From Macrostomum lignano (taxonomy: Eukaryota): a DNA stretch of 64,000 bases. This document shows, in pieces, positions 7,440-42,076 of the stretch. The DNA lies in assembly GCA_002269645.1 (NCBI GenBank), contig NIVC01003037.1, positions 1 to 64,000 on the forward strand, given 5' to 3'. Below the pieces are notes generated by a model. It was not told the DNA's origin and ran no database searches. It was given only the letters and a program-made list of their open reading frames with translations. Each line of letters begins with the position of its first letter. Within the stretch, counting starts at the first letter, position 1. A program made the translations under genes and the position numbers.

Positions 7440-8264
7440 TTAATCGAACAGAGACAGGCACTCGCAGAGGGCACCTCGCAGGTCCGGATCGTTCTCCCAG
7501 AAGTCAGATATCTTGCTGGTTTTATACTTGCCGAGAGTATTCTCCCTATCCAAATAGTTGCTTGGCTCCTTCTCTGCCCAGTAACTGGCGTTGAACGCGA
7601 TGTTGCAAGCGACCCAGTACCAGCCATCGGCAGCATGCGCACTTCCAGGTGCTTGAAAGCCTCCAACAAAGAAGTAGCCAATGCTGTAATTGTTGTAGAT
7701 GAAGTCCAAATGCTGCAGCTCAGTAGTGCTCGTCATGTCAGCCATGATCGACAGGCTCCTTTGCCCTGCTGCCACGACATTGATGCTGGACTCGAAACGT
7801 AGTTTAGCCTGTACTTCACTCCGCACAGGTCGTCTCCGTAGCCAGAAGGACACAGCGCGCCCGCCTCGAGTCCCGGCTGCTGCTTCACAAACACCCGGCC
7901 TCTCCTGGAGCAGCCGCAGTCCCTCACCGACTTGCTGCACTTGTCGAACACGAACAGCTGGCACGGACCGTCAGCCAGGCTGAACGCCTGACAGTGCCGG
8001 TTGCGGCTGCACATCAGCGAGCAAGAGAGCTCGTCGGTAGCCATGCCGAAGGTCTGCACAAACTCAGGGTTGATACAGAGAAATCCATTGATTGGTTTGA
8101 AAGAAACCTCGTTCGAACAGTCGTCCTGAGCAGTTCCATAGGTAACCAGCAGGTGCAGCAGTGAACAGATCAACGCCACTCTAAAGTGTAGACCTAGTGA
8201 GTTAATTTTTTGAGCGCATGAAATCACAGAAATTTGCCTCAATTTACCGTAGCTTGTAGTCCAT
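7440..8264 (-). pseudogene. PAN/apple-like + C-type lectin paralog 1 (CTL-1), frameshifted at ~7749-7750. Exons 8264-8248 and 8180-7440
   Basis: ATG GAC TAC AAG CTA CG|gtaaat...tttag|A GTG GCG gives MDYKLRVALICSLLHLLV (signal peptide). After ...GKGAC the frame shifts; the lectin C-terminus (IMADM...FFVGG...WYWVAC...WAEKEPSN...LCECLSLFD) is in the other frame. About 19 nt are missing relative to paralogs (CESESGLVIM). Confidence 0.8.
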
Positions 8265-9013
8265 CGTTTCAATTTTCCGAGGCATGTAAATTAAGTGACA
8301 TCCGGCCTAGAACTATATACGAGTACCCATCATGCCAATTCGCTTTGATTGGCTGCTACTCGCGCGTATCTATTAATTTTATTTGGAAGTGAATTTTGAG
8401 ACTTTAGCTGGAAGTCGCTGACTAAAAGTAATTTTCAAAGTAGTTCGTACATTCATGACTATCTTGCAAAAAGTCGGAACGTACGTCTTGCACATTTTAG
8501 AAACGTCACGGGCAAGGACGCTGATTTACAGTAAATAATCCAGTCACTGCTACTGTTGTCCAGAGTACACAGTCTTGGCAGAAGAGACGAGATGACTAGA
8601 GAACTGCACTCACCGCTGCTCTAAAAAGAACTTCGTAGTCGGAAAGACTCTCAAGCGAAAAAAGCTTGTCAAATTACCGGCGTAACTTTCGACAGAATAT
8701 CTGCAGTTGAAAACATTTGTAGCATTCTTTAGTGCTGAATAGAGTAGTACTGTTCTAAACGATTTCTATTTTAAGACAACTTTCTTTTGCGTGAAAATTC
8801 ATCATTAATATTTTAGTCGACAGGTAAATTTTTAAAAACTTAAGGCGCAAAGAAACTTTCAGGTTTTGCGGAAACAAAACTCATTTTAATAATATATGCA
8901 TAGCTAATGCTGCTTTCACATTGAATGTGTACCCTATACACAGTGTATACACAATGCGGATACGAAGTTGGTTTTTCTTCCGGTAAAACTAATATTTCAT
9001 TTAGCTGCGCATG

Positions 9014-9846
9014 TCAGTCGAGGGGAGACCAGCATTCGCACAGGACGGCTCGTGGGGTAGCGGAGAAGTCTCTGAAGTCGGACAGCTTGTCGTGATCGAA
9101 CCACCTTCCGATAGCATTCTCCGGATCCTCGGGCTCTCCGCTGCCCCACAGGCTGGCGTCAACAGAGATGTTGCAGCCGACCCAGTACCAGCCGCCTGCT
9201 GGCTCCGGGCTGCCAGCCGGCTGGAGGCCGCCCAGCCAGAACGAGGTGCCGCCCGCCCGGCTGTCGTAGATCGAGTCCACGTGGCTCATCTCGGAGGCGT
9301 CCACCACGTCGGCCATGATCACCAGACCGCTCTCCGACTCGCACAGGCGTCTGCTCGGCCACCAGAAATCGGCGTTAAAGTGCAGCTTGTACTTCACTCC
9401 GCACAGGTCGTCTCCGTAGCCAGACGGACACAGCGCGCCCGCCTCGAGTCCCGGCTGCTGCTTCACGAACACCCGGCCTCTCCTGGAGCAGCCGCAGTTC
9501 CTCACCGACTTGCTGCACTTGTCGAACACGAACAGCTGACACGGACCGTCAGCCAGGCTGAACGCTTGGCAGCGCCGGTTGCGGCTGCACATCAGCGAGC
9601 AAGAGAGCTCGTCGGTAGCCATGCTGAAGGTCTGCACAAACTCAGGGTTGATACAGAGAAATCCATTAATCGGGTTGAAAGAAACCTCGTTCGAACAGTC
9701 GTCCTGAGCAGTTCCACAGGGAAGCAGCAAGTGCAGCAGTGCACAGAGCAGCGCCACTCTAAAAAGTAGTGAGTCAATTTGTTTTTTTCTGCCGCATGAT
9801 CAAATCGCACAAAAAACTCCTCAATTTACCGTTGCTTGTAGTCCAT
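9014..9846 (-). CDS. Secreted PAN/apple-like + C-type lectin paralog 2 (CTL-2), 253 aa. Exons 9846-9830 and 9758-9014
   Basis: 71-nt GT-AG intron (9829-9759) joins MDYKQR to VALLCALLHLLLPCGTA (signal peptide). PAN-like C..C-x3-C-x5-CQAF..C; CTLD with CPSGY, WLGG, WYW, LWGSGEPE, LSD, VLCE. Confidence 0.88.
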
Positions 9847-10184
9847 AATTATTTTTCTGTTTCCAATACCGAAATGTTTGAAATAGGTACTACATGTGTG
9901 TCGAAAATTTTGACTATAGTTCTGAATTATATAGCTGAAAAATCTCCCCTGTCAGTCTTGGCGTTTCACTACTTTACCAACATCCATTCGGGAGTGAGTT
10001 TTGAAACTTTGATGTGCCTTGCTCCTACTAAGTGTTCAGACCATTAGCAAATTGACTGGCTTGATGCTGCTATTATAAAATGGCGCTCTTCCTAGAATTT
10101 GCTATCCTTTTGTCCTCCTTGGCCCAATATCGGTAGATTCCTGAATATCATCGCTAAAAGCTTTTTGCCATATAACCAATCCAT

Positions 10185-10198
10185 GTTTCTATGGTAAC
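10185..10198. promoter_or_regulatory. Possible RFX X-box
   Basis: GTTTCTATGGTAAC fits the X-box consensus and lies ~340 bp upstream of the CTL-2 ATG. It is a single short motif. Confidence 0.25.
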
Positions 10199-12789
10199 AA
10201 CAGCCTCCCTCCAACGGAGATCGCAGCTGTATTGCTAATGGTGTGCGCATTACCGAATCTGCGAGAATGGGTCGTCACCGAACCTGAGATAATGGTGATA
10301 ATTTGATGTAAAATTTCATGCCTAGTTTTGCGGTCATATTCATGAAACGCTTTATTATAACGACGTATACTAAACGCAACTTATTTTTATTTGGTCGTCG
10401 ATTATGCCTTTTGGTTTGTCAAGCCGTGTTTTCAAACTTACGAAATACGACTATTAAGACGTTTTGTTTATGCGATTATTTGATGTAATGAAATGATGTA
10501 ATGAAGTTTAAAATGAAATGGCGAATTGAAATGCATGCAGATATGGATATAAAATTGAAAAGCTTCACAAGAAGCAAAATTGATTAAATATAGCGTAATA
10601 AATTATCTACCATGAACTCATAAGTTCCTGCTTTTTAGATCGGCACTTTTCTTGCCATTTGCAATGCCCCACTAACTATATACAGCGCATAGCCCCTGAT
10701 CTACTTAATGACATCGGAATGCAGAACCTATCAACCCAAAAAAGGGCATGCTATTGTGGTAGTGCGAAGTAAAACGCGAGTGATAGTGGCAAGAGTTATA
10801 GTGAAAAAAGTAAAAAAAGCCGCAGTTTTAACTAAAATGTTACAGATTTGATTTGTGATCTCGCAATCTGTCCTTCTCAACTTTTAAGGACCCCCAGCTA
10901 TAGCTGGGCAGGCTGGTTGCTCTTTCTGCGTGTGTCGTTCCGATTTCCATCTCGCAGACAATCGTCGGGCCGGGCGAAAACGAAGCCAAAATAGCATTGA
11001 GATTGTGTATCAAGGCGCTGACCGACAAGCTAAGGAACTTTCACGATGTCAGTCGTTCATCTAGTCTGGTGCCCGACGTCCGCGAGGATCTGCAGTGTCG
11101 CCGCGTGCTTGTCTGGACTGTCTTTAATTCTGTGAGGGTGATTCGTGATTCTGCAGTCCAAGAGAGGCAACGGCGACAGACAAGTTCGAACAGCAGGAAG
11201 TTGACTCTTCAAGATCAGCGACGAGCGAGATACCAACACGGCACTGTATTGTGGCGGGGCCTAGCTGGTCCGTCCAAGCGACCTGTTGCGCCCTCGGTGA
11301 CGTCAGCTGGCAGGCCGAGTCGTACTGCCCTCAGCCGGTGCAGGAGGTGCTGCTGCTGACTCTGCAGTCACCCAGCTACCGGCACGTACATTTACTCCGC
11401 CTTTCGTCGACTGGGTTCCAGCTGAGGCCGGTTTGCCAGATCAAAGTTCGGTGGCGAAAATCGCGATAAAAATAATCAAAAGCACGTGACTTTGCAAGAC
11501 TGTTGTCTGGCGTTAAAAATTGGCTCAAAGTAGGGAAAAGGGGCAAAAAACGCAAAGAGCCGCCTGCTAGTAGTCCACACGGCAAGAGCTCAATATGATA
11601 GTATATTAAAAGTTTTAAAAGAATGAGTCCTCATCAGAAAACTGCAAAATACTTTTTGAGTGGCCCGTGTAAGCATCTGTAATGAATTGGTGTTTGTTGA
11701 AACATCTTGTTCACATTTCAACAAGCAAGTTTCTCAGAGGGTGTCACAACTGAATGCAAAACTATTGAGTTGAAAATTGACGCGAATAAAAAGATGGCTT
11801 TCTCTAAGCAGCCTGTCTATCAATTCTATTGTTTACCTGCGAAATTTAGAGTGGCCTCACGTCAACAAAGCAACCCTGGCAGGTTCCTCAGGCATGAGGA
11901 CTACATGCTTCTTTCCAGGTCACTCAGGGTTACAAAAGAAATTGTCAGAATTAGTTGCAGCCATCATTCAACATCAAATGCGAAGAGCTCTTGCTACTCA
12001 CCTGCCCACAGATACTCGAGGCAGATGCATCTAGGAGAACAGAATAAGGAGAAATGCAAAGCCCTGTGGAAAGTATGCAGACCTCTTTTGTGCTATAGTT
12101 GTCGCTGAAAAGTAGAAAACAGAGAACAGATACGAAGTTATCCACATTCAGGGACGAAATTCACGAATACCTCAAGGTGATGCGGATGTGAATACCGTGA
12201 GCGGAGGTTGATTTCTCCACCGGAGATTACCCGTGTCAAATGGGTCACTCGAATGACGATTTACTCTTATGCTCTTATGTCATGTACGTCCTCTAGTTTT
12301 AAAAAAGGCAAAACCTTCATCTCAGTCGAGTTTCCATAACAGCCCCAGTGCACAATGTTGAATTAATGAACGATACGTCAAAATAGTAAGACTTTTTGGA
12401 ATTGCTAAATAGAAAGAAAAAGCAAACCAGCTGTCACTAGAAGTGAAGAAGCAGACTTCATTTCAATTTATTATGAAAAATATTTTGATTTTATTTGATT
12501 CATTTTGATTTTAGCTCGTAATGGTACTTTAGGTAAATAACAAGGCGCTGCTGAAAACGCTCAAATCCCTTAGTGCTAAAGAAACTCATTACTTTATATT
12601 ACGATAATTAATTGAAAATTTCTCTAAAAGCAAATCGATAGAGATTAAAATTAATAATAAAAATGAGCCAACCTAGACGAGGTCACCTGGAACGTCACGA
12701 ATAAGTCGGTTGTCTACAAACTGCGCAACAAAGTTAAATGGAAAGGTAAAAATTAGCCTGCTTAAATATTGTAAATTTAGCTGGGGATG

Positions 12790-13518
12790 TTAGTCGAAGG
12801 GAGACCAGCATTCGCACAGGACGGCTCGTGGGGTAGCAGAGACCTCTCTGAAGTCGGACAGCTTGTCGTGACCGTTCCACCTTCCGATAGCATTCTCCGG
12901 ATCCTCGGGCTCTCCGCTGCCCCACAGGCTGGCGTCAACGGAGATGTTGCAGCCGACCCAGTACCAGCCGCCTGCTGGCTCCGGGCTGCCAGCCGGCTGG
13001 AGGCCGCCCAGCCAGAACGAGGTGCCGCCCGCCCGGCTGTCGTAGATCGAGTCCACGTGGCTCATCTCGGAGGCGTCCACCACGTCGGCCATGATCACCA
13101 GACCGCTCTCCAACTCGCACAGGCGTCTGCTCGGCCACCAGAAATCGGCGTTAAAGTGCAGCTTGTACTTCACTCCGCACAGGTCGTCTCCGTAGCCAGA
13201 CGGACACAGCGCGCCCGCCTCGAGTCCCGGCTGCTGCTTCACAAACACCTGGCCTCTCCTGGAGCAGCCGCAGTCCCTCACCGACTTGCTGCACTTGTCG
13301 AACACGAACAGCTGGCACGGACCGTCAGCCAGGCTGAACGCTTGGCAGCGCCGGTTGCGGCTGCACAGAGCGGCACAGCCGATCTCAGAGTGCGAGCCAG
13401 GTGGAGTTTCAATGAAGTCGCTCCTGATGCACAGGTAGCCTTTGATTTGTCTGTAGCTTTGTAGCACTGCACCTGGAAGTCCAAACGCCAAAAGGATGAT
13501 CACCAGCTTTGCTGACAT
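12790..13518 (-). CDS. Secreted PAN/apple-like + C-type lectin paralog 3 (CTL-3), 242 aa, single coding exon
   Basis: ORF begins MSAKLVIILLAFGLPGAVL (signal peptide). Same Cys core as the other paralogs; lectin domain ~97% nt-identical to CTL-2. Confidence 0.9.
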   Translation of the reverse strand: MSAKLVIILLAFGLPGAVLQSYRQIKGYLCIRSDFIETPPGSHSEIGCAALCSRNRRCQAFSLADGPCQLFVFDKCSKSVRDCGCSRRGQVFVKQQPGLEAGALCPSGYGDDLCGVKYKLHFNADFWWPSRRLCELESGLVIMADVVDASEMSHVDSIYDSRAGGTSFWLGGLQPAGSPEPAGGWYWVGCNISVDASLWGSGEPEDPENAIGRWNGHDKLSDFREVSATPRAVLCECWSPFD

Positions 13519-15246
13519 TTGATTTTTCGTAGCGCGGATATGATCGGTGAGTTAAAAGTCGGTAAAAATTAGTTGAAGCACGAGACGGACGGGTGGTTAC
13601 TAAATGGAATGTTTTGTTTTATCCAACGCTCACCGAATTTTAATGCTATGAAAGAAAATCTACCAGAGAACCTCCATGCTTGTTCATATCAAAAAACTTT
13701 TCTGTTGCGAGGTTCGGGGAGTGTGGATTGCAATGGATACCAGCGTGGGCCGGATTGGCTGGGCCACGGAGTTCTAAACAGAGCACCTGAATTGTACAAT
13801 GAAGTACAAGAATCAATCACTTAATTAAGTTTGGCATCCCACTTCTGTCAGATGCTCAACCACACAGTAAAATAGGCGTAGCGAACATGTACATGTACAT
13901 CTATACAAGTAACTAAGAGCTAAGACAGCGAGAGACAAGTAGAGAGAATTTAAAAGGTACAGAGATTAGCTAATCTCGAAGTCATAGCTGCTCAAAACGG
14001 CACGCTGCATCTACAGGATTGCACTGACCATGACGGAACAGAGAGGGATGTTTGCAAGCAGTTCTTGCGCATACACAAGTCTATTGGAGAATTTAATTCC
14101 CAGAAAGAGAATTTTCATGTACCCGTACTTGAACTTTCACGTGTTTGGCCTTAAATGTGTCAAATCGACGGTTAGCGCTGGCGCAGAACTAAATGTACAT
14201 GTATCAGAGCATTTAGTAGATCACCGCCTTAGGGAATTGCAGCGTCAAACGGAGTTCGAGCGACGTGAGAATTTTTGCAGTAGCTTGTTCAAAGAGGTGC
14301 GGTTTGGTGAGCGCGTCCACGTCATCCTACTGTTCCCGGTCATGAGCGGCCCAAGAGCTCAGCATGCAGCTGAGTCATCACTGACAGCTGAATTGCTTTT
14401 TGCAAAATATACTGGACAACAAAAACTTGTCCAGTATCATCGAAAGCTAGCTTTGACTTCAATTTTTTGACGGCTTACTCTTTAAGTTGAATAAACTCTC
14501 TGCAAGCTCGCATCAGTTTAAAGTAGTTAAGGGCATCATTATATTGTACTCTGAGACGTTGTGAGTGCATGTACTTCACATACCATACTACTCGTAGACA
14601 AGGTGTGCAAACGGATTAATTACCTTTGAATTCGAAAATTGCTTACTTACTTAGCTCCGAAGAGCAGGTAAAAAGCAAATTTTAACGGTTGAGCGTGTCG
14701 TCCAAAGCAAGATTTGACTTGTCAGCCAGCTCATTAGTGCTCAACCACAGGAAATTATTAATTACTGTCAGATTTATGCATGTATATTGACAATAGTTAT
14801 CTTTTGCCCTATTTTCCTTTATGTACTTTTGCGTTTAGGGGCCCCCAATTGGGCCGTTTTCCTTTTCCTGTTGTGTGCACTTTAAATATAGCCTGGCCCT
14901 CGCCTCGGTCTCTCAATTATCTCTTATCTCTCTCTCCTCGCTCTTCCGTTTTTACGCTCGTACGACCGTTTAAATACGCCTGTTGCTAAATTAGTTCTGT
15001 GTTAGTTCATTCCTAGTCAATTACTAGCAATCTACGCCCCCCGTTGGGGAGCCAAAGAAATGCAATACACGTTTTTTAATAAGCTACATGTATCCTTGAA
15101 ATCTTAAAAAATCTCCTGTCAAACCTTGTAAGCCTTGACATGTCAGTAATTCCCCCCCCACAAGCTTTAACATATCAACTTCCCCCCTTGACATCTCAGC
15201 AATGCCCCCAATAAGCCTTGGAAATCTAAAAATATCTGTCAACTTT

Positions 15247-15306
15247 CTAACCCTAACCCTAGCCTAACCCCAACCCTACCCTAACCCTACCCTAACCTAA
15301 CCCTAA
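15247..15306. repeat. Degenerate interstitial telomere-like (CCCTAA)n tract; weaker copy at ~15700-15750
   Basis: CTAACCCTAACCCTAGCCTAACCCCAACCCTACCCTAACCCTACCCTAACCTAACCCTAA. Confidence 0.8.
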
Positions 15307-16139
15307 AGCATTGAAATAAAGCATTGAAATTTCAGTAATTCTCTCTAAGAGTCATTATAGCACTACTACAGCATTATAGCGATTCCCTGCAAGCCTCGAC
15401 ATCGTAGGGATTCCCAAATGAATCTCTTAACTTCGACATGAAGCTTCTTTTATTTTTTACATTACGCTTTTTTTATCAGCGATCCCTCCCCTGAGGAGGC
15501 ATCAAATAATGTAATAAAAAGTTTTCAATAAACTACATGTAGCTTCTGACTTTAGCCTTGAAATCTCATTTATACCCACGTGAGCCTTGACATCTCAGCT
15601 ATTCCCCCCGTAAGCCTTGACATGTCAGCGATGGCCCCCATAAACCTTGAAATCTAAAAAATCCCCTGTTATTCTGTTAACCTTGAAACCCGATAAAATA
15701 TAACCCTCAACCCACACCTGACCTAAACCTAACTTTAACCCAACCTAAAGCCTTGAAATCTCAGCAATTCTTCTCCCCTAAGCCTTGAAATTTTAGTGAT
15801 TCCTTCTTTAAGAATCACAGCATTATAACGATTTCCACCAAGCTTTGACATCGTAGCAATTCCCAAATGAATCTTTTAACTTCGACATGACTTTTCTTTT
15901 ATGTATACATAGTGCTACTTTTATTTTTTTACATGACTCTTCTTCTATCAGCGCCCCCCGTGGCGAGCCAACAAAGAATGTAATGAAAAAATTGAGTAAA
16001 GTACATGAACTTTGAAGTATTGCAATAGCTTCTGACTTTTGCTTTGACATCTCAGAAACCCCCCCCCGTAATCTCAGTTATTCTCTGATAGCCTTTACGT
16101 CTCAGTTTTTCTCCCCAGCACAGCATTATAGCTGCATTT

Positions 16140-16320
16140 AATTTTTTACATGACACCCTTCATGTCTGACATGACGCTTCTATGATTTTTTACATGACGC
16201 TTCTATGATTTTTTACATGACGCTTCTATGATTTTTTACATGGCATTTCTATGATTTTTTACATGACGCTTCTATGATTGTTTACATGACGCTTCTATGA
16301 TTTTTACATGACGCTTCTTT
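16140..16320. repeat. Minisatellite, ~23-bp unit, ~7 copies
   Basis: TTTTTTACATGACGCTTCTATGA repeated. Confidence 0.9.
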
Positions 16321-16938
16321 TTAAAAAGTCTTTTAGTTTTCCTGACGTTAAAAAGCTTTAATTAAAAAAATTATACTTTATGAAAATTCGAACCAATTCG
16401 AACCAAACTGCATTTAGCAGTTCAGTTTGTTTACCTCTAGGCTAGCTCTCATCGTTTTGATAACACCAAATTTTGCACTTATATAATTCAACACTTTAAA
16501 ATCCAAGCATAGAGTAAATCACACAAAGCAGTTATGACATAATCAGTTTCTCAGTCAGTCAGTATCAGTTAACAATATGGTTACGCAATTTAAATCAAGT
16601 CTGGTGCTACACTTCCACACTGCATTTTCAATTCAAGTCGGAGTTACAATTCAGTTATGATGCAATCTATTTCAGAATCAGAATTCAACCAGTCAGTTTT
16701 TTTTCTAGCATTCTTACAATGCATTTCAAGTCGAAAAGTTTGCTTGACCTTTGCAAAAAAGCATGTTTTTCGAATATTTAATGCCTTTAGCATCGAGCAA
16801 TTTCTTAGCCACGATGCATGTACAGTCACGGGAAAATTTCTGATCGAACAGTGCAAGTCTTATGAAAATCGGTTAAGCCATTTTTTCTGTAATCGATTAC
16901 AAGCAAGCAAGCAAGATTTTCATTTTTAGTATATAGGA

Positions 16939-19900
16939 CTAGCCAATTCCAACCCCCGTTGGGGCTTTCCGTCAGAACTCCTACCAAAGTTTTCCCACGC
17001 AAAAGAAATTCACCCAACTCAACCCCCCATCCAAAGAATCTCTAATCCATAAAGTCCCTGATGCAAATAATCTCACATGCAAAAAACCCTCATCCAAAGA
17101 ATCCCATACAAAGAACCCCCCATCGACAGAATCCCCGATCCGAAGAATTCCCCATTCAAGGTGCCTCTATCTGTAGAATTCCCTATTTAATGAGTCGCCC
17201 ATCCATAGAATCTGACATGCAAAGAATACCAATCCTTCCCGTCCCATCCCCATCCCATCCCATTGATAGAATCCCCGATCCGAAGAATGAATCCTCCCAT
17301 CTGAAGAATTCCCCGTCCAATGAATCCCTTATTACAGAAATAAGTCCGTTGGGGCTTTCCGTCCAAACTCCAATCACAGTTTTCCCTATCCACAAAATCT
17401 CCGATGCAAAGAATCTCACATGCAAAGAATCCTTTATCCAAAGAACCCCCATCGATTGAATCACCGATCCGAAGAATTCCCCTTTCAAGGAATCCTCCCA
17501 TCTGAAGAATTCCCCATCCAATGAATCCCCTACTCAATAAATCCTCATCCACAGAATTCCCATCCAAAGAATCCTCCATCCATCCATATCCAAAGAATCC
17601 ACCCAAATAATTCATATCATAATCCCCATCCACAAAATCCCCATCCAAAGAAACCAAAGAATCTCCCATCCAAATAATCCTCCTATCAATAGAATTCTTG
17701 GCCAAAGAATTTCCTCATCTAAAGAACCCCGTCCAAATAATCCCCATACAAAGAATCCAAAGAATCTCCCATCCAAATAATTCCCCTATCAATAGAATTC
17801 TTGGCCAAAGAATCCCCTCATCTAAAAAACCCCCGTCCAAATATCCCCCATCAAAAGAATCCTTTATCTAAAGAATCCCCCGATTCAAAAAATCCTCCAT
17901 CGAAACAATGCCCCATCGAAGGAATTCCTCAATGAATCAAAGATATACATTAAAAGCATCCCTCATCCAAAGAATCATCAATCCATAGAATTTCCCCCAA
18001 GGCTTAACATCTCAGCCGTTCCCCCAAGCCTCGACACCTCAGAAATTTCCCCCAAGCATTGACATCTCAGCAATTCCGGCGCAAGCCTTGACATCTTACC
18101 AATTTCTCCCCGTCCAAAGCCTTGACTTCTCAGTAATTCCCCTCCCCAAGCCTTGACATATCAGTAATTCCCCCAGTAAGCCTTCATATCTCAGTAATTC
18201 CTCCAGTAAGTCTTGACATCTTAGCAATTTCTCCCCGTCCAAAGCCTTGGCATCTCAGCGATTTCCCTCCCAAAGTCTTGACACCTCAGCAATTCCTTCT
18301 TAAGCCTTCACATCTCAGCAATCCCCCCAAGCCTTGACATCTCAGAAATTCCCCAAGCCTTGACATCTGAGTAATTCTCCTTCCCAAGGCTTGACATCTC
18401 AGGAACTCCCTCTGAGCCTTGATTCCCCACAAGCTTTGACATCTGAGCAAGTCCCTCTTAAGCCTTGGCATCTCAGCAATTCCCCGACGGCGACAAGATT
18501 AGACATCTCAGCAGTTTACCCCTAAGACTTGACATCTCAGCAGTTTACCCCTAAGACTTGACATCTCAGCAGTTTACCCCTACTAAGACTTGACATCTCA
18601 GCAGTTTACCCCTAAGACTTGACATCTCAGCAGTTTACCCCTAAGACTTGACATTTCAGCAGTTTACCCCTAAGACTTGACATCTCAGCAGTTTACCCCT
18701 AAGACTTGACATCTCAGCAGTTTACCCCTTAGACTTGACATCTCAGCAGTTTACCCCTTAGACTTGACATCTCAGCAGTTTACCCCTTAGACTTGACATC
18801 TCAGCAGTTTACCCCTTAGACTTGACATCTCAGCAGTTTACCCCTTAGACTTGACATCTCAGCAGTTTACCCCTAAGACTTGAAATCTCAGCAATTCCCC
18901 TCACAAGCCTTGGCATCTCAGCAAGTCTCTCTTAAGGTAAGATTTTATACATGTATCTCAATAATTCCCCTGTAAATCTTGACATCTTAGAATTTTATTC
19001 CGAGCAAGCATCCCCCAAGAGAAAACGTCCTTCTGATAGCAATCATCCCTTGATAGAAAGTACCCCCAGCAAGATTAGTGAAACAATTTCCTCAGCTAGC
19101 CAATTCCAACCCCCGTTTGGGCTTTTCGTCCAAACTCCAACCACAATTTTCTTACACAATAAAATTTAACCCAACTGAATCTCCCATCCAAAGAATCCAC
19201 CACCTATAGAATCCACGATACAAAGAATCTCACATGCAAAGAATACCCCATCCAAAAAACCTCCCATTTATAGAAACCCCTATCCGAAGACTCATCTAAA
19301 GAATCCCCGTCCAAACAATGCCATATCCAAAAGGATCCCTTTATCGAATGAATCATTCATCTAAAGAACCCCCCATTCAAAGAACCCTCCATCGAAAGAA
19401 TCCCCCATCGAAGGAATTTCCCAATGAATCACCTATCTAAAGATATCCATTAGAAGCAGCCCTTGTGGAAAGAATCTCCAATCCATAGAATCCCCCCCCC
19501 CAAGAATTGACATCTCAACAATTTCCCCCAAGCTTGACACCTCAGTAATTCTCTCTTAAGCTTTGTTATCTCAGCAATTCGCTCTCAAGACTTGAAATTT
19601 CAGGAACCCCCAAGACTTGACGTCTCATAAATTTTCCCCAAGCCTTGACATCTCAGCAGTCCTCCAAGTAAGCCTTTATATCTCGGTGATTCCTCCAGTA
19701 AGTTTTGACATCTTAGCAATTTCTCCCCATCCAAAGCCTTGCTATCTCAGCGATACCTCCCCAAGCCTTCACATCTCAGTAATTCCCTGCGTAAGCCTTT
19801 ATATCTCAGTTATTCCCCCCGGTAAGTCTTGAAATCTTAGCTATCAAGGCGTCCAAAGCCTTGACATCTCAGAGATTCCCCCACGCCTTGAAATCTCAGC

Positions 19901-27525: not shown

Positions 27526-27724
27526 GCCGGCTTCAGAGCTCTATTTATTATCTAGCAGTTGCCGTTTTTGTAATTTTAAGTTACGGTAACAACATGAAAT
27601 TTATTAGGTTTAATGTTATAACTATTTAATGCAGCTGAGAGACTGAGAGGCCCTATAGGGATCAGAAGGACTTAAGAACTGGGATATTCTAAAGAAAATA
27701 AGGACCTATGGAATTTATGGATAG

Positions 27725-28450: not shown

Positions 28451-28766
28451 TTCATGGAAACATAAATTTTTGATAAAATGAATACAAAGGGAATGAAAGA
28501 CAATAAAAAAGCAATACTTAAAAGTATAATTTGCTCACAAACTAAAAATTGAAGCAAAGAAATAATTTCAAGGACAGTATTTATTTACATGTATATAGTT
28601 AAAGTAACTTATTTCCAAAAAAAGAGAAATTGCAAGCACAGCCTTAATTTCAGTTTGTAAACAGTGTTAACAGTTTTGGACGGAATTGAAGCTTATATCT
28701 GGTCGTTTAGTCATCAAGTCATTAAAGCGATGAAGCCACGTGTCTGCGCCCGACATCTTGAGGCTG

Positions 28767-31700
28767 CTACTTGACCGGAACAGCTGTTGCTGTTGCCTCA
28801 TCGGAAGCCGAACCGGAAGCAGCAGTCGGTGGTGCAACCGGGCCAACATCTTGGTCGCCTGTGTCGACTAGAAGGTCACCGGTGACCTCTGCGAACAATC
28901 TGTCCCAGTCCCAGTATTCGTCCGGCTCCTGCAGGTCTTGGTCGGCGGCCAAACACCGGGTTAGAAGTTTCAAATCGATCTCATTGTCCTGCGGGGTGGA
29001 TGGCTATTCCATTGATTGCTTGCAATATGCTGTTTGCAATGCGATTAAGGGCGATTCTTAAATTGGTTTAGGGCGATTCTCAGAAACTTAGAGTGAAGAC
29101 ATTTTTTCAAAGGATCGAAGCTGATATTTTGTTAAGAAAATAACCCGACTTATATTTGACACAGCTAAAAGTACAAACCAGAGTTGCAAATGAAGCGTGC
29201 CGATTAAGGTCGAAATCTAATTCGCGATAAGTGGCCACACGATTGACGGCGATGCTAAAATGTGTGTATAAATTGTAATTAATAAAGCTATAAAAATATG
29301 CTCGTATTTAAATGTCTCAAAGTAAAGGCTTGACAAAATACCTCGGCGCCTTTGCCATCTCGGGCGGTTCGTTTACTGATGACGCAACAGGCGCTTCCTC
29401 CTTCAACTCCGGTATAGCGGCAGCGCCTGAAAGTTCAGTTTGCACTTTTATATTTTATCATATATACAAACTAGCTCTGAGAATAACTGATACGAGCGCT
29501 AGAGACCAACGTTTCGCAACAGACTTCGTGTACATTTTGGGAGAGAAATACAGATAACCCTAGCTTGATTGAGGCCCCAAGCACCCCATTCTGTGTGTAC
29601 ATTGGGGGAAGGGAATACAGATAACCCTAGTATGATTGAGGCCCAAGCACCCCATTCTGTGTGTACATTGGGGAAGGGAAATACAGATAACCCTAGTATG
29701 ATTGAGGCCCCAAGCACCTCATTCTGTGTGTACATTGGGGGAAGGGAAATACAGATAACCCTATTATGATTGAGGCCCCATGCACCTCATTCTGTGTGTA
29801 CATTAGGGGAAGGGAAATACAGACAGTCTTGGTACGATTTAGTCGTATTGGAATTAAGATAATGTTTAAGTTTAGAAAGTGCACACACACGGCAAAATTT
29901 TCAATAAAATTACGAATTTCAATCAAAGAGATGAACATTGTTAGGTGATTGTAAAATTTTAGGGAACTTTTGCGAATCTGTATCCAAGTAACGCGCTGGG
30001 TGGTTTTAAGTAAAAGTGAAAAAAATGTTAATAATATATAGTTTAAAAGTCTGAATTAATTAAGAATGAAGAAATCGTTGACAATATTAGAGAAACTACT
30101 ATTTTAAATGCAATACGAAACACACTGCAATCAAGTTGTAGTTTGTACTACCGGTGAGACGAATAATGAATAAAAAAAGGTTAATGAAAAGACTCGAACC
30201 TCCATCGTCTGAAAAAGTAGTGAACATTTTTTTCATTTTAGCCACATTAACGAAGTATATGACTGCTTAACTCAATGCCAATAAATGATCAATACAAAAC
30301 TAATCAAAATTAATTTAAATTCTTACCATCCGAGTCGGAGAATCGTTTCTCCCTGAATTTGTCGCTAAAATGAAAAAAGTAATTAGAAATGAATTAACTA
30401 TATTGTTAATCTTAAAGGTTTTGCAAAAATGCCCACCCCACGGCAATTTAAACAACACAGTCTGTGTCTTGCGACAGACGATAAACGTATATTTTGAGTA
30501 CTTTGTTGCTTGCTAATTTGCGTGCTTAATATTAATTAAGGATTAATAATAGTACGTGCTCAATAATTCATCCCAAGCAGTGTTACTTGTTTCCGAAATG
30601 GCAAAAACAAAATGATGAAGCCAAATACTGAATTATAATATAGCAACTATTCCTCCCCTATATAAACAGTAAAAAATGTAAATTTTCTGGGATTAAAAAG
30701 GCAAAAAAATAGGTTAGCGGCCGTGGCTAGCAAATTGACCGACAAAAATCGATTCGAGTCACAGCACCACACAGAGCAATAAAGTGGGCCACTAAGGACA
30801 GAAAAAAGTACAAATTTAAGCTGGGTTAAGAACCGCTGGGAGGAGAGTGGGTGAAGAAAGCGCGACAAGAGGGCACAATAGACTTAGGCGGGGTGTACAA
30901 GCCCGGCCTGCAAAACGGGTCCCACTACGTGCCCTAAAGCCGGTTTGCACCATCACAAGCTCCAGTGCAAACCGAAACAGGAGTGGCTGACTGGCCCATA
31001 AAATCGATAAAATTCACACCATTCAAGCCACAGCCGCTCGCAGACAGACTCTCAGAGCAATTAACCGAGGCCAGTAAGGTTAAGGGAGTGACTGACTGTC
31101 TAAACCATAAAATAGATAAAATTCACACCATTTAAGCCACAGCCTTTCGCAGACAGATTCTCAGAGCAATTAACCGAGGCCAGTAAAGTTAAGGGAGTGA
31201 CTGATTGTCTAAACCATAAAATCGATAAATTCACACCATTCAAGCCACAGCCGCTCGCAGACAGACTCTCAGAGCAATTAACCGAGGCCAGTAAAGTTAA
31301 GGGAGTGGCTGACTGTCTAAACCATAAAATCGATAAATTCACACCATTCAAGCCACAGCCGCTCGCAGACAGACTCTCAGAGCAATTAACCGAGGCCAGT
31401 AAAGTTAAGGGAGTGGCTGACTGTCTAAACCATAAAATCGATAAATTCACACCATTCAAGCCACAGCCGCTCGCAGACAGACTCTCAGAGCAATTAACCG
31501 AGGCCAGTAAACTTAAGGGAGTGACTGACTGTCTAAACCATAAAATCGATAAATTCACACCATTCAAGCCACAGCCTCTCGCAGACAGACTCTCAGAGCA
31601 ATTAACCGAGGCCAGTAAACTTAAGGGAGTGACTGACTGTCTAAACCATAAAATCGATAAATTCACACCATTCAAGCCACAGCCTCTCGCAGACAGATTC

Positions 31701-34700
31701 TCAGAGCAATTGAGAGTTGGTACATGCAGACAAAAAAATTATAATTTCTGTAAACAAGACATTGAATTTCTTCAGTAATTATTTGAATGCATATTTTTAA
31801 ATATATATCTAGAAACAAACAAATAAAAAACAGCAAATTGTAGAGCAAAGCTAGTTGCACCTATCAATAAAAGATCATATCACATATCATTGTGCCCGGA
31901 TATGTATTTCTATCTTCATCGAAAGCAAAGCGAGTGTACCCAAAATAGCATAATAAAATAATGCATAAATATCTATACAACGAACATAGTAAGCACCACG
32001 GCACAAAATGGCATTAACTAAATACGAACTGGGGTTTCATTGAACGCTCCACAGAGTCAATTAGATGATCAAATCTCCTGCAAATTAGTTACATTTACGC
32101 CTATATTTCGATATGAAAAGAAATTTAGCATAAGTTGATTAACAAAAATCAACGGAGTCTGTAAATCTAATATTTTCAGATTTTTTATTCACCTAATTAT
32201 TTGCTACATTTCAGACAATTAAGCCAGCAACAGCAACTCACTCTCCAAGTTCGTCGTCGGCACGACGACCGCCGCTACCAGCCGTCCTGGGCGGCTCGTC
32301 TCCCCAACCGCCGCGTCGCTTTGGCTGTACAAGGTGAGGGGAGTGAGGCAGATTGCGTACCTGTGGTGTGACTGGCTGCGATTTTAAATGGGGACCGAGG
32401 AGAGATTCTTGGAAGGGTTGAGGGGCGATTCTCGTAGAGTTTGAGGCATTGAGGGTGATTCATGACGTCGCAGAGGGCCAATTCTCGGGAAAATTTGAAA
32501 GGCAAATCCTGGAGGCTATGGGGCGATATGCTTCGAAGAATAAGGAGATATTGGATCAAAATCAAATAGGAAAAAATTAAATCAGACTTACAGCAGCTCC
32601 GCCATCGGCAGTGGTGCCGCCAGCTGAATCCTCTTCTTCATTGGCACGCCGGCCCATTCTGGCTTTCTATTAAATGGATTGAAAATGAAATAACTGTCAG
32701 TAATGTTAATGGCTAATCATCTCTACCTATAAAAATCAAAACTCTGTCTGTCTGTGTGTCTGTGTACAAATTTGATCGCTATGGACTCCATTTGTACCGC
32801 TCGACCGCCCGACCAACTGAGACCAAATTTTGCACCCGCCCTAAACTTACTACGGAGAATGTCTTAGGCTACCTTAAAATTTCCTAAACTCAAGTCTTCT
32901 TCCTACCTAAAAGTGCAAAAAACTGCTCAAAATTCGCGATTTTTTTTACTAAATCCTCCATAGCGCCGCTCCACTTCTACCGATCCTCTTCAAATTTAAC
33001 ACAATTAATCTTCAACTATTTTGACACAATCGTGTAAAATTCGAGTCGGAAAGTTAATCCTGAAAGGCGCTGTGCACTTTTAAAGTTGGGCTGTTTTTTC
33101 AGCGAGGCAGCCACCCCAACCTCCGCCCGCCTGCCTCTCTTTCCCGATCTGGGCAAAGGGTGTAAATAGGTTTAAAATGACTAAATTTCGGCTGCCATAA
33201 GTTTGCTCCACGTGAAGCGATTGACTTCAAATTTGACACAATTCTCTATTGACTCATTCTCTATCTAAATGTAAAGTCTCAATTCTGTATCTCAATCAGG
33301 ACGGAAACTGTAAGCATGTGAAGTTTTTCTGCTTTTTCTGTTGTTTGTGCCGCTAAATCACTCTCACTCATTCCTCCCGCCCAGACGAAGGATCAGGCGA
33401 TAGGGCTCAATGTACATAGCGAATGTAGAGTGTTTTGGAATAACTTTTTAATAGCCTTCTCTGCACCCCGCGAGTGGAGAGGCGTGAGAGGAGAGACAGT
33501 TTAGCGAGAGATTCAAACCACTGTCCTCTGAATAGACAAAGTCTGCAGCAGTTAAACAAGGATGACAATTAGCAAATCAAGGCGATGTGGGATGGTTTGT
33601 AAAAATAGAGAAAAATTAATGAATAACTGATTACAATGCAATCCTACTAAATTAGTTACACCATGAAAATTTTAACATTAAGATTCGCATAAGGTACTTT
33701 AAAATTTAAATGGCCTCCTAAGAAATGTGTATTTCCTTGGTTGTTAGACTGCTGCAGACTGTGGTGGAGCTGAAGATACACAAATTCTTTACAGGGCTTG
33801 CAAATTGGCAAGAAAGATGACATGATCAAAGCATGAGAACAGCCATGAGAGTACTATATCCCACAAACTGGCTTTCCAAGCAGGAATGGGCAGACTTTTA
33901 CCTCAAAGGCCAGAAAAGAATCCAGCTTATGGCTGAGGGGGCAGTTGAGAGTAGGGATTCCAAAATCCCGACATTTTACAATCCCGGGATTGAATAGTCC
34001 CGAAATCCCGATGCTGTTGAAATCCCGGGATTCAAAATCCCGGAATCCCGGTGCTTTTGCAATCCCGGGATTAAAAATCCCGGGATTCGATTCCCAAAAA
34101 AATCCCGGGATTCAAATCCCGGATTTTTGGCCCCAATCCCGGGATCCCGGGATCCCGGGATTGGAATCCCTAGTTGAGAGTGGAGAGAAGGAATAGACTA
34201 TTCGAAAAGAGGGGAGAGGTGAGAGAGTGAGGACGATGAAAGGAGAGAGTAGAGAGGAGAGAGTAGAGAGGAGAGAGTAGAGATGAGAGAGTAGAGAGGA
34301 GAGAGTAAAAGAGCGAGTAGAGAGGAGAGAGTAGAGGAGCGAGTAGAGAGAAGAGAGTAGAGGAGCGAGTAGAGGAGCGAGTAGAGAGGAGAGAGTAGAG
34401 AGTAGAGTAGCGAGTGGAGAGGAGAGAGTAGAGTACCGAGTGGAGAGGAGAGAGTAAAGTAGCGAGTGGAGAGGAGAGAGTAGAGAGGAGAGAGCAGAGA
34501 GCTGCAGATGAGAGGAGAGCAGAGAGAAGAGCAGAGAGGAGTTAGTAAGAGGAGAAAGGAGAGATGAGAGAGTAAATGGAAGAGAGAAGAGATAAGGTTG
34601 TACAGATGAGAGAGGTGTAAGGAGAGATGAGAAATGAGCGATGAGAGATAAAGGAGGAGAGTGGAGAGAGAAGAGACGAGACAATAGAGGGAGAGAGTAT

Positions 34701-37700
34701 ATAGAAGAGGGAAGAGAAGAGAAGAGAAGAAAGGAGTGAGGAGACAAAAAGAGATGAAAGAAAAGAGTACAGAGGACAGAATGAGAGAACATATAAGACA
34801 GTAAAGATGACAGATGAAAGAGGGAGGATGAGCTGAGAGCAGAGACGAAAATGAACAGACGAGAGATGGGAGAGTAGAGAGAACAGAGGAGAGATAAGAG
34901 AGAAGAGATTACAGAGACTAGAGGAGAGACAAAGGGAGAGAGAGAAGTGAGTCAAGAAGAGAGAAAAGAGGAGAATGGAGGGGAGAGAGTAGAGAGGAGA
35001 AGAAAGATGGGAGAGGAGAGATAAGAGAGAGAGGGGAAGCAGAGAGAGGAAGCAGAGAGAGAGGGGGGAGCAGAGAGAGAGGGGGAATCAGAGAGAAATG
35101 AAAAGAGATAAAAGAGAAGAGAGAGAAGAGAAAGGAGAGATCAGAGAGCAAATACAGACGAGAGAGAAGAGAGGTGAAGGAAAGAGAAAAGAGAAAAGAA
35201 GAGAAAAGAGATGAGATAAGAGAGATGAAAAAGAAGAGAAATGAGGGAAGATACGAGAGAAGAGGCGAGAGAGGAGAGAGGAGAGAGGAAAGAAGAGATG
35301 AGAGGATGAGAGGAGAGAGAGAGGAAAGAGTAGAGAGGAGAGATGAGAGAGTAGAGATGAGAGAGTAGAGGAGAGAGTTAAGAGAAGAGAGAAAAGAATA
35401 GAGAGGAGAAGGAAGAGACGAGAGAAGAGGGGGGAGAGGGGAGAGGAGAGAGAAAACGAAAAAGTAGAGAGGAGAGAGGAGAGGAGAGAGAAAAGAAGAG
35501 ACAAGAGATGAGATAAGAGAGATGAAAGAGAAGAGAGATGAGGGAAGATACGAGATAAGAGGGGAGAGAGGAGAGAGGAGAGAAGAGGAACGAGAGAGAA
35601 GTCGAAAAGAGAGGAAACAGAAGAGACGATAGAAATTTTAAAGGATCCAAGGGACGTAGGGAGAGGCCAGAGTTTGCAATACATGTTTTAGAGTCAGACA
35701 GACATTGCCTGACATTCTGCACAAGCTAACACCCAGCTAACAGTATCAATGTTTGCCTCAAATCCAAATTTTACATGAATGTGTCCATTTTATGTCTACC
35801 TCTATCCTACTAACTATTAACAAGTTTTTGTTTGTGTATGGCCTTAGATTTCAGAATACATGCAAAAGTAGTTCTGGGGATTGGAATTCCCTGGGTTCAA
35901 AATCCGCGGGTTTCAACAGCTTGTTATAATTATAAAATAATTAGTATACTTTCCATAAAAACCTCAAAATATAATCAATTAAATATACATGCATCAGTTA
36001 ATTATTCTAATGTAAGCATGCCATTATTCAACTGAACAATATCACTTATTTTGCACTATTTTCAGTTACATAGCTAGGATTTTGAAAAGGGGGATAGCTT
36101 TAAGGGCCAAAATTTTAGACTAATAAAATAGTTTTTTGTATTTTTTGCTAAAATAAGCATTTAAAATTGCCAATACCATGTTTATTAGGCTAAAAAAACT
36201 TTACTTTGTTAAAATCAGAATAAAGCCAGTAGATGTCTGTCCTGACTAGGACATTCTTGGACCTAGGAATTTGTAGAAATATTGTTTATAACACTTTATT
36301 AGTAATTTATAAGTGAAATAGGCCAATTTTTTGCAATTTTGCTAAGTTTAAGTCACTTTATTTTGCTTTTTTTCTTCAAAAAACCAAATTTTTGTTTCCT
36401 ATAAATCTTCAAAATGGGGGGATATATCCCCATATCCCCCTAGTTATGCTACTGACTATTTTACACTTTTTGCTAGCTTATCTAAAGCTGAGTTAGATCT
36501 AAACATTTTATAGAAATTGATTTTTAGCTACTAAAATAGTAGCTACTATATGCAAGAATTTTTTATTGCTTGATATGTCATGTCATATGAATAAGGTCAG
36601 ATCATGGATAGACCAAGTGGCTGAGAATTGCATATGTGGTGTAGTGATTAATGGTAACACTTATAATGATATATGACATACTAAGAAATCTTGATAGGCT
36701 CCTCCTTATCACTCATAGTCCAGATCATGGCAAGCTTATGCTGGAATTAAAATTCTAGTTTCTTTAATTCTACACTGATTTTGTGTAGAATTAAAGTTGC
36801 TTTTAATTTTGCTTTGCCTCCCCTATAATAAAATTTATGGCAATGTCCCTGTCTAGTGTTGAAGAATTAGAGTTGCTAATATAACAATTAACAATAAAAA
36901 TGAACTCAATTTTATAGTTTACAATATATACAGAATTTAAGTTATAAATTTTTAAATAAAGCAAATTCTCAGTTCAAATCAAAGATAATATTTTATATGA
37001 TTAAAAATGAAATAGGTAATATCAAGTAATTTTTTATCATAAAATAATATAGCCTAATAATAATAAAGGTACAAAGTAACTAAATAGGCTTATATACTAT
37101 AGTATAGACAAAAATCTAGCATTGATATAGAAAATATAAATATGATGAGCTTGCATACATAGCAGCTTGCCTATACATGCGCAACCTTGGGAATCACTCA
37201 GCCGTTTCTATTGGCAACAAACACATGTAAGTCGCTGAGTGCAGTCACGTGACTACTATTCCGCCCAATAGCGACTTACATGTGTGTTTTACCAATAGAA
37301 ACAGCCAGGTGAATCCCTAGGTTGCACCCAAGCATGAGCTTTCCATGTCTACCTAGTGTTTTAATTGTGTACATGGCAGCCATATATGTAATAAGTCATA
37401 TACTATTCAAATTTATTCGCAAATTAACAAAAAAATAGCATTAGCAATGAATTGAGACTACATTGGGCATGCATGGTGTACATGGGATAAAACATGATAA
37501 AACAGTATATATTGTAACAATTTTTAATTAGGTTTAGTTAGTAGCAATGGCAATGCACAGATTTGAGGGAAAGGGTCCTATTCACTAGGCATATACTGCA
37601 GCCAACTGCCAGCCGCTGTGCACACAATTAAAGTACTGAGTGGATAGCCACCATGCACGCAATTAAAACACTAGGTGGTTGGCTGCCGTGCAGGCATGCA

Positions 37701-40349: not shown

Positions 40350-40686
40350 AGAAAGTGAGAGCTGCTGTACACCCTGTATACGAACTACAGCAGGGTGTCA
40401 GCTCAGGTGCCGAGTACCTGCCCCCAATTGGGCCAGATGTGCGACCGACAGCTCAGCCGCAGCTATTGCTGCGTACGGCTGTCCAGTCCAAGGACTGGGG
40501 GGGGGAGGGGTCGCCACACACCCTCAATTACCCCAGCTAATGCTGGCACCCATTTTACAGCTGAGTGATCTGGAGCAGTGCAGAGTTAAGTGTCTTGTTC
40601 AAGGACACAAATTGTTCCGAGTGAGTCGGCAATCGAACTCCCAACCTTCAAGTCGTGAGTCCGATGCTCTAATCACCAGGCTATTG
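40350..40686 (-). mobile_element. tRNA-derived CORE-type SINE
   Basis: Minus strand: A-box-like TAGCCTGGTGATTAG, B-box-like GGAGTTCGATTGCC, then CORE-like TGTGTCCTTGAACAAGACACTTAAC...CAGCTGTAAAATGGG (40609-40549). The 3' boundary is approximate. Confidence 0.75.
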
Positions 40687-41329
40687 TCTACAAAACCTAC
40701 TGATTCAACTAAATCAATGCATAAAGCCAAAAATTGTCAAGCCTTTAGGATTTGACAACTGTATGATTGAAGTTCTGAAGATTTATTAGGGATAAATATT
40801 CAAGGTTGAGTTAAATTGCGATGAAAAAAAACAGAAATCGAGTTGATCCTTAAATGTAAAAAGAGAATGGGGGGATCACAGGTGGGAGACGGTCGAGGTG
40901 TCAACCATAAGGGCCGACATCACAAAACACAGAGAGGCGCAGTAAACTGTTTGTGAATCTTAGTTACCAGAGTGCATCAGGACCAGACACTATATTCTAA
41001 AACCATTTTAAAAGAAGCGATTAATATTAATTTGCGTTTTAGGCAATAAAACTGACAGCAATCTAATAATAAAATAGCGATTTGATAGCGACTCATACGG
41101 GTAAAAGCGGTTGACGCTGACACGAAATGACGAAATGTCCTTACATGCACAGAACTTGCTTATGAAAGGAGTCGCTATTACATATACATTAATTTAAAAG
41201 ACAAAAAAGAAAGGAACGGAGAGGAATTACCGCAGCAACAAATGCGGCTTAGTGATCAAGATTGCTTCTCTGTCATCTGTTTTACGCTAATCGTTGGTGA
41301 TTTTTTGACGTTTTACTCCAGCCACGGGC

Positions 41330-42076
41330 TCAGTTGAATGGCGACAAGCATTTGCAGAGAACTTTAGGGAGGGTAGTAGCCTCACCTATATCAACTAGCT
41401 TTTCACGGTCACTAAGATGCGCGATAGCCCTCTCGCTGCCTCCTCCATTGTTTGGCTCGCCAAAGCCCCACAGGCTGCCGTTCAGAGGAATATCACAAGC
41501 AATCCAGTGCCAGCCTACTTTTGGGCTTGAGGTGTCTACTTTCTGGTAGCCTCCAAGAAAAAATGATTTACTACGGTGAATCCCGTCCACGTGGCTCATT
41601 TCGGCGGCGTCCACCACATCGGCCATGATCACCAGACCGCTCTCCGACTCGCACTTCTGTCTGCCAGTCTGCCAGTTGCCCATTTCACTGAGCAGTTTGT
41701 ACTTCACTCCGCACAGGTCGTCTCCGTAGCCAGACGGACACAGCGCGCCCGCCTCGAGTCCCGGCTGCTGCTTCACAAACACCTGGCCTCTCCTGGAGCA
41801 GCCGCAGTCCCTCACCGACTTGCTGCACTTGTCGAACACGAACAGCTGGCACGGACCGTCAGCCAGGCTGAACGCCTGACAGCGCCAGTCGCTGCTGCAC
41901 CAGAAGGTGCAGCCGGCCATCGAGGCAACGTCAGGGAGGCTCCGAACGAACTGGCGGTTGATGCAGAGGCTGCCGTTGATGCTCGAGTACGAAGCCACGT
42001 CAGCTGCCTGCGCAACTTTGAGCAGGAAGAGAAAAACACAGAACTGCTGGGAGTTGCTCAGCCTTGATGGCGACAT
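41330..42076 (-). CDS. Secreted PAN/apple-like + C-type lectin paralog 4 (CTL-4), 248 aa, EPN motif. Probable 5'-UTR intron 42156-42078
   Basis: MSPSRLSNSQQFCVFLFLLKVAQA signal-like leader. Same core as CTL-1/2/3; lectin part FFLGG...WHWIAC...LWGFGEPNN...LVD...VLCKC. GTAAGT donor at 42156 and TTCAG acceptor 1 nt before the ATG. Confidence 0.88.
   Translation of the reverse strand: MSPSRLSNSQQFCVFLFLLKVAQAADVASYSSINGSLCINRQFVRSLPDVASMAGCTFWCSSDWRCQAFSLADGPCQLFVFDKCSKSVRDCGCSRRGQVFVKQQPGLEAGALCPSGYGDDLCGVKYKLLSEMGNWQTGRQKCESESGLVIMADVVDAAEMSHVDGIHRSKSFFLGGYQKVDTSSPKVGWHWIACDIPLNGSLWGFGEPNNGGGSERAIAHLSDREKLVDIGEATTLPKVLCKCLSPFN

Follow-up and report, generated by a model that had tools for sequence, protein, structure and literature searches.

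A short near-identical core in diverged PAN and C-type lectin paralogs of Macrostomum lignano suggests patchy interlocus gene conversion

We analyzed a 64,000-nucleotide stretch of the genome of the flatworm Macrostomum lignano (GenBank assembly GCA_002269645.1, contig NIVC01003037.1, positions 1 to 64,000; hereafter the window), which carries four paralogous genes (CTL1 to CTL4, all on the minus strand) for proteins that combine a predicted PAN/apple domain with a C-type lectin-like domain (CTLD). These genes share a core segment of about 205 nt that is nearly identical in all of them, silent sites included, whereas flanks of different classes have diverged up to saturation. We consider it likely that old and diverged paralogs of a birth-and-death family are subject here to patchy interlocus gene conversion, which is confined to the core by selection.

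The initial annotation of this DNA had described a block of 185 nt in four genes (7810-7994, 9388-9572, 13164-13348 and 41698-41882). We found the four blocks at these positions, and translation of the minus strand yielded the peptide CQAFSLADGPCQLFVFDKCSKSVR(D/N)CGCSRRG(R/Q)VFVKQQPGLEAGALCPSGYGDDLCGVKY. Pairwise comparison over 185 nt gave 6 differences for CTL1 versus CTL2 and for CTL2 versus CTL4, 4 differences for CTL1 versus CTL3 and for CTL2 versus CTL3, and 2 differences for CTL1 versus CTL4 and for CTL3 versus CTL4, in exact agreement with the earlier counts. The near-identity of the blocks is real, but their length had been underestimated, since self-BLAST indicated a high-identity block of 203-208 nt. 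It extends over 7806-8013 in CTL1 (97% identity to the CTL3 and CTL4 blocks in self-BLAST), and self-BLAST and pairwise counts placed it at 9384-9591 in CTL2, 13160-13367 in CTL3 and 41698-41900 in CTL4. When sequence identity was followed in a sliding window, it rose from 35-60% to 93-100% at the core and dropped back down behind it. No intron is located at the core borders, as had been reported before, because the open reading frames (ORFs) of CTL2, CTL3 and CTL4 read straight through both of them.

On either side of the core the genes fall into classes, and we confirmed the proposed assignment of the N-terminal modules (A, A, B, C) and of the lectin modules (X, Y, Y, Z) to CTL1 to CTL4. CTL1 (7440..8264; A, core, X) is a pseudogene as assembled and its ORFs lie in two frames. 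CTL2 (9014..9846; A, core, Y) is an intact chimeric gene coding for 253 aa. CTL3 (12790..13518; B, core, Y) and CTL4 (41330..42076; C, core, Z) are intact single ORFs of 242 and 248 aa, each with a signal peptide, and CTL4 is located 28 kb away from CTL3 with unrelated genes between them. The N-terminal parts of CTL1 and CTL2 are 90% identical in self-BLAST and the start codon is the exact beginning of this similarity. A 593-nt tract with 97.3% identity is common to CTL2 and CTL3 (8999..9591 versus 12775-13367). It consists of the core, the entire lectin module Y and 15 nt beyond the stop codon, and on the 5' side it has the same edge as the core. For CTL4, near-identity to the other genes is limited to the core and to a second island of 69 nt (41585-41653 versus 9275-9343 in CTL2, with the CTL3 copy at 13051-13119; 3 of 69 nt differ). 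This island encodes CESESGLVIMADVVDA.EMSHVD, and 44 diverged nucleotides lie between it and the core.

Quantification of the synonymous divergence (dS) between the paralogs yielded values of 0.02-0.13 for the core, but of 1.3 up to saturation for flanks of different classes, and the synonymous differences of core and flanks were significantly different (Fisher P 1e-8 to 1e-17). The informative sites of the N-terminal module (25:0:1) grouped CTL1 with CTL2 and CTL3 with CTL4, whereas those of the lectin part (0:0:28) grouped CTL2 with CTL3 and CTL1 with CTL4. The core itself contains mutually incompatible sites. Because the core dS is far below the flank dS and because the trees of the segments are not congruent, the conclusion that interlocus gene conversion or recent exchange homogenized the core is well supported. 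These data also bear out the initial annotation, in which the uniformity of the core, including its silent sites, had been ascribed to gene conversion. The GC content at third codon positions (GC3) reached 0.85 for the core and 0.83 for lectin module Y, but 0.57-0.78 for the flanks that have no near-identical partner (N-terminal modules, X, Z), and this pattern is compatible with GC-biased conversion.

The core copies of the paralogs differ by about 1-3%. Since the three subgenomes of M. lignano diverge to a similar extent of about 2% (PMC10733133), the last core exchanges are recent. Homogenization is local and not family-wide, because clearly different cores are present in other M. lignano paralogs. 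At the protein level, the cores of the relatives P0001, P0003 and P0007 from this species are 84-93% identical to those of the window (flanks 35-56%), and the corresponding values for P0002 and P0005 from other samples are 69-75% (flanks 30-51%). The M. lignano relatives, which were retrieved by an exhaustive profile search, are protein sequences without DNA. Across the PAN-lectin family, the core is the most conserved protein segment.

The combination of a PAN and a C-type lectin domain, which had been proposed from the translations, is supported. Among solved structures, the family profile matched the apple domain of Eimeria MIC5 (1hky, E 3.8e-5) as well as the CTLDs of codakine, mosquito GCTLs, snaclecs and DC-SIGN (E 1e-4 to 1e-2), and structural modeling with AlphaFold (AF2) followed by Foldseek comparison was in agreement with this assignment. 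With Pfam, Lectin_C did not match any window protein even at E<=1, and PAN_4, PAN_3 and PAN_2 reached 11-17 bits, which is below their cut-offs of 21-27. The relative P0031 scored 25.5 bits for Lectin_C (cut-off 22.6) and was just under the cut-off for PAN_1, and another relative (P0006) is named 'Apple domain-containing' in UniProt. Two word-index homology searches returned five relatives only. The exhaustive profile search recovered 1115 proteins, mostly via the lectin part, and the sampled ones carry Pfam Lectin_C.

The AF2 model of CTL4, which was calculated from 24 sequences, had a mean predicted local distance difference test score (pLDDT) of 89.9 and a predicted template modeling score (pTM) of 0.84. 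A model from 8 sequences had a pLDDT of 47.6 and was uninformative. The C-terminal 140 residues or so of the model matched CEL-I, codakine, langerin, CD23 and mincle with Foldseek template modeling (TM) scores of 0.74-0.86 (E 4e-8 to 8e-7, about 135-143 columns) and adopt a CTLD fold. Residues 30-102 were modeled as a beta-beta-alpha-beta-beta-beta arrangement with a pLDDT >95; the top Foldseek matches were driven by the CTLD. In the model, the core corresponds to residues 66-126 and comprises three PAN strands (66-70, 76-80 and 96-102), the linker and the start of the N-terminal CTLD hairpin (118-133), which is of the long form (CPSGYGDDLCGVKY). According to this model, the core is a PAN-CTLD junction segment and not a structural module. 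Because it straddles the domain junction, the N-terminal and lectin modules, which had been regarded as units, are not structural units either, and each of them would constitute only part of a domain. In the alignment, the EPN/QPD position reads EPN in CTL4, EPE in CTL2 and CTL3, and EPS in CTL1, and the WND position is altered to (S/V)D(F/I). Judged from these residues, sugar binding by CTL4 is plausible. In general, the CTL proteins may bind glycans.

These observations can be put together in the following scenario. The family would consist of small secreted Macrostomum proteins with a signal peptide, a PAN/apple domain and a long-form CTLD, and the strongest purifying selection in this family would act on the core segment of about 205 nt. 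Selection on this structural hinge may keep the core copies similar enough for heteroduplex formation, and ectopic conversion would then wipe out the remaining silent differences. In this way, similarity maintained by selection would confine conversion to the core. The flanks (40-60% identical) would be too diverged for pairing and the conversion tracts would end at the block edges; the sharp common borders could be explained because flanks of this kind stop heteroduplex extension. Occasional longer exchanges anchored in the core might produce hybrids such as CTL2, and the same instability might yield pseudogenes and gene fragments.

Several points weigh against this scenario. The evidence comes from four genes and three fragments, and Mlig_3_7, which was assembled from PacBio reads, contains many chimeric scaffolds (PMC10733133). 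The islands of 205 nt, and above all that of 69 nt, are near the lower limit that is commonly assumed for efficient homologous recombination, and an exchange with CTL4 would have to bridge 28-34 kb. When the core was compared with single homologs of uncertain orthology from other samples (L001 and L002), dS values of 0.56-0.88 were obtained, and this comparison gives no direct proof of concerted evolution across species. Moreover, the similarity between CTL2 and CTL3 stops 15-23 nt past the stop codon, and the intergenic spacer between CTL2 and CTL1 (8265..9013) is unique, since sensitive blastn returned only the self-hit and no homolog in the window or in the additional contigs L004 and L007. 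Given this end of the similarity and the unique spacer, the origin of CTL2 is explained neither by a simple conversion nor by a simple unequal crossover.

CTL2 is the only clear chimera of the locus, with a 5' part like that of CTL1 and with core and lectin module like those of CTL3; the pseudogene L4a in another haplovariant is a weaker second case. Haemoglobin Lepore and anti-Lepore are hybrid genes that originate from unequal crossover. The CTL order B-Y, A-Y, A-X looks like the anti-Lepore product of B-Y and A-X, and the joint lies in shared homology. In contrast to the haemoglobin case, the CTL locus lacks the predicted intergenic duplication and the similarity to CTL3 ends shortly after the stop codon as indicated above. 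We therefore rejected anti-Lepore unequal crossover as single-step origin of CTL2.

In the A-type genes (CTL1 and CTL2), the main ORF lacks an ATG. From the sequence, we infer a first exon of 17 nt followed by a GT-AG intron of 67 nt in CTL1 (exon 1 8248-8264, intron 8181-8247, exon 2 7440-8180) and of 71 nt in CTL2 (exon 1 9830-9846, intron 9759-9829, exon 2 9014-9758). This splice model is based on a conserved ATGGACTACAAGC(T/A)ACG, which is followed by GTAAAT...TTTAG, and the predicted splicing would restore a signal peptide (MDYK(L/Q)RVAL...). CTL1 carries a 19-nt deletion between 7759 and 7758, which leads to a frameshift and a premature stop codon at 7733-7735. The same deletion is present in contig L005, but the 19 nt are retained in the X copies of L004 and L007. 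Beyond CTL1 to CTL4, no further family copies were detected in the 64-kb window by tblastn. The four genes were not found in the protein databases searched or in the NCBI annotation, in which the only gene model within 10 kb, on all four contigs of the locus, is that of an M13 peptidase. Exact-protein look-up indicated that no assembly has the CTL3 and CTL4 proteins on record. These missing annotations and protein records weakly argue against expression of the CTL genes. A distant family member (P0011, PAA63283.1; L003 10001-11386) is solitary with unrelated genes on both sides, and it contains introns (1386 nt for 261 aa), whereas the CTL copies of the window are almost intronless.

The M13 peptidase cluster gave access to three additional contigs of the locus (L004, L005 and L007), and together with the window they represent three haplovariants. 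The first one (H1) comprises the window and L005, which are 99.77% identical; it carries CTL3, CTL2 and CTL1 with the 19-nt deletion, and all paralog-specific core variants are reproduced. In the second one (H2, L007), CTL3 is identical to that of the window, but neither CTL2 nor the 5' two-thirds of CTL1 is present. Both are also absent from the third one (H3, L004), which carries a CTL3-like gene (L4b) cut off about 30 nt into the block and the pseudogene L4a. L4a has the structure A'-core-W, and its lesions include a change of ATG to CTG, a deletion of about 65 nt, a TAG in the core and a 4-nt insertion. In H2 and H3, an A-type upstream region is fused, via a 4-nt microhomology (AGTG), to the final 9 nt of the core, and an isolated X fragment remains. 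L4b adjoins a 3.2-kb insert with a reverse-transcriptase fragment. Taken together, lectin module X is non-functional in every copy seen in the three haplovariants, and two of the three core breakpoints are non-homologous accidents.

Several details of these contigs were noted in addition. The insert of L004 extends over about 1700-4941, is absent from the window and is located directly upstream of L4b; its RVT_1 fragment is at 3327-3923 on the minus strand. At 4733-5488 of the same contig, the core continues an unrelated 5' sequence in frame, which gives an accidental ORF of 251 aa. Over CTL3, L007 and the window do not differ, and over window positions 10074-18229 their identity is 99.0%; the X fragment of L007 has 0 differences from that of L004. 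Such a mosaic may have arisen either by subgenome exchange or by scaffold chimerism. The CTL3 copy of L005 (2274-3460) contains several 1-2-nt indels next to a gap of 85 N, which are typical for unpolished long-read errors, and L005 skips window positions 13830-20608, a tandem-repeat region.

According to the initial annotation, the core is a recombination hub that mixes N-terminal and lectin ends and gives a combinatorial system of secreted lectins (mucus, immunity or microbe recognition). As a rival explanation, such a hub would be under selection and would swap the ends repeatedly, in the germline or somatically. This interpretation is weakly supported and we regard it as unlikely. It is true that the switch point of CTL2 is located at the 5' edge of the core and that A-type N-terminal modules occur together with three lectin classes (X, Y and, in L4a, W). 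In addition, the lectin parts are mosaics on a fine scale (in one 30-nt window, for example, W resembles Y at 94%, and in the next one it resembles Z at 87-96%), the nonsynonymous differences between CTL2 and CTL3 are clustered near the predicted binding loops, and the proteins are secreted and lectin-like with the EPN motif kept in CTL4. On the other hand, a single clear chimera stands beside dead copies. The number of copies is small, CTL1 as one of the four is a pseudogene, and none of the three haplovariants has a functional X. Since the borders of the core cut both domains, every swap would yield hybrid domains. The breakpoints in L004 and L007 had to be discarded as evidence for a hub, because an AGTG-microhomology deletion and a retroelement insert are both non-homologous events. 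Other family members have cores without such homogenization, the annotation lacks CTL gene models, and among the scanned ORFs of at least 200 aa there was no diversification enzyme or signal sequence. There is no large array of donors or variants either, with four copies in 64 kb and fewer and decayed ones in the haplovariants.

Recombination-diversified immune repertoires include MHC segmental exchange, Ly49/KIR, plant NLR clusters, snail FREPs, sea-urchin 185/333 and lamprey VLR. The CTL locus shares with them recognition-type or secreted proteins and a conserved scaffold that is combined with variable patchwork segments across paralogs. It differs from them by its low copy number, its dead member, the dead copies in the haplovariants and swap points that cut domains. 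A related version, in which the core is a selected exchange point that, together with short-tract conversion of lectin loops, makes and keeps new secreted PAN-lectin specificities, possibly in a somatic or individual-specific manner across the three subgenomes, appears rather improbable to us. If it were true, the locus would represent an invertebrate lectin system diversified by recombination.

An origin of the core identity from the assembly of Mlig_3_7 (collapse, short-read polishing over repeats or scaffold chimerism) is very improbable. This genome has three subgenomes, haplovariants that were mis-collapsed or expanded, and 36% of the assembly length in chimeric scaffolds (PMC10733133). 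Unpolished indels are indeed present beside the gap in L005, and L007 resembles a mosaic of window-like and L004-like parts. However, 2-7 paralog-specific differences remain between the cores and are found again in L005, as CTL3 is in L007; this recurrence in a second contig makes an assembly collapse unlikely as source of the identity. Furthermore, the block of about 205 nt is embedded in unique flanks and can be spanned by long reads, and an artefact cannot turn saturated divergence into in-frame identity of 97-99% in four genes. Finally, the M. lignano protein P0007, which comes from a different assembly, has a core that is 93% identical.

A nucleotide-level constraint without any conversion (RNA structure, a regulatory or small-RNA target, or an overlapping antisense gene) is hardly credible: plus-strand antisense ORFs do overlap CTL2 (9011-9769) and CTL3 (12787-13464), but they span the entire GC3-rich genes and not the core alone and are missing over the AT-richer parts of CTL4, which fits a by-product of base composition, and there is no intrinsic constraint on the silent core sites, because they vary freely in the comparison with the other-sample homologs (dS values as given above), the predicted RNA structure of the core is not more stable than shuffled sequences (z = +0.98) and no Rfam family matched the window. 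An RNA-level constraint was rejected on the same three grounds. The two antisense ORFs are 252 and 225 aa long, each placed exactly opposite its gene (CTL2 or CTL3), and the very high GC3 of the sense frame is the most likely reason for their presence.

Patchy interlocus conversion, which remains our preferred explanation, has precedents. Mosaic divergence by this mechanism has been described for the tandem AhHMA4 copies (10.1101/2025.10.29.685298), for Drosophila duplicates (PMC2588116) and for mammalian Hsp70 (PMC5865164), and NLR clusters such as RPP8 show mosaic interlocus conversion as well (10.1101/694240). As in the AhHMA4, Drosophila and Hsp70 paralogs, homogenization of the CTL genes is limited to tracts and includes synonymous sites, the borders are sharp, the trees are in conflict and the conserved part is under purifying selection. 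In contrast to these examples, the CTL islands are very short (about 205 nt and 69 nt) and are embedded in saturated paralogs, one of the partners is located 28-34 kb away past unrelated genes, and the organism is a neopolyploid with three subgenomes.

In UniProt, the M. lignano relatives (A0A1I8...) are named 'C-type lectin domain-containing' or 'Apple domain-containing'. The CTL proteins resemble these entries and P0031 (about 245 aa, from other transcriptomes) in length, in architecture and in the motif CQAF...CSKSVR...CP.GY...CGVKY. They differ from the annotated relatives in that their cores are near-identical in DNA, whereas the core proteins of the relatives differ by 7-16% or more. The literature on M. 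lignano C-type lectins concerns adhesion proteins and not the PAN-lectin family. On present evidence, the CTL locus is a sharp new example of the known mosaic interlocus conversion and not a new kind of system, and it does not reveal a new mechanism of diversification.

The locus offers a quantifiable case in which purifying selection on a structural hinge can restrict conversion to a tiny island in saturated paralogs of a neopolyploid animal. It also draws attention to a cluster of unannotated lectin genes in a model flatworm, for which transgenesis and knock-down are available. For practical work it should be considered that the near-identical block of 205 nt will cause chimeras in PCR and assembly, so that claims of new combinations need chimera controls.

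The M13 (neprilysin-like) peptidase next to the CTL genes is encoded by a single ORF (4144-6252, minus strand) and is 99% identical to M. lignano PAA88503.1. Copies of this gene (BOX15_Mlig013943g1, g3 and others) occur on four contigs of the assembly, in keeping with the three subgenomes plus a redundant contig. Exon-like ORFs on the minus strand were detected at 22357-25250, 53681-58715 and 60641-61249, and their domains are those of importin-11 TPR, of ZMYND8 (coiled-coil/MYND plus bromodomain) and of a nucleotide-sugar/TPT transporter. The importin-11-like ORFs are located between CTL3 and CTL4, and the ZMYND8-like and transporter ORFs beyond CTL4.

The window is crowded with minisatellites (27 rows in the Tandem Repeats Finder (TRF) output, periods of 7-133 nt, up to 65 copies), and the arrays include 2123-2738, 17992-18923, 27734-28450, 30996-31711, 42763-43902, 44839-45693, 47393-48102, 49224-51562 and 54902-56870. 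An array of 60 copies of a 19-nt unit begins about 690 nt upstream of the CTL4 start codon. Finally, a purine-rich low-complexity tract of 1.4 kb of the AGAGAGG type (34208-35598) shows extreme GC and AT skew.

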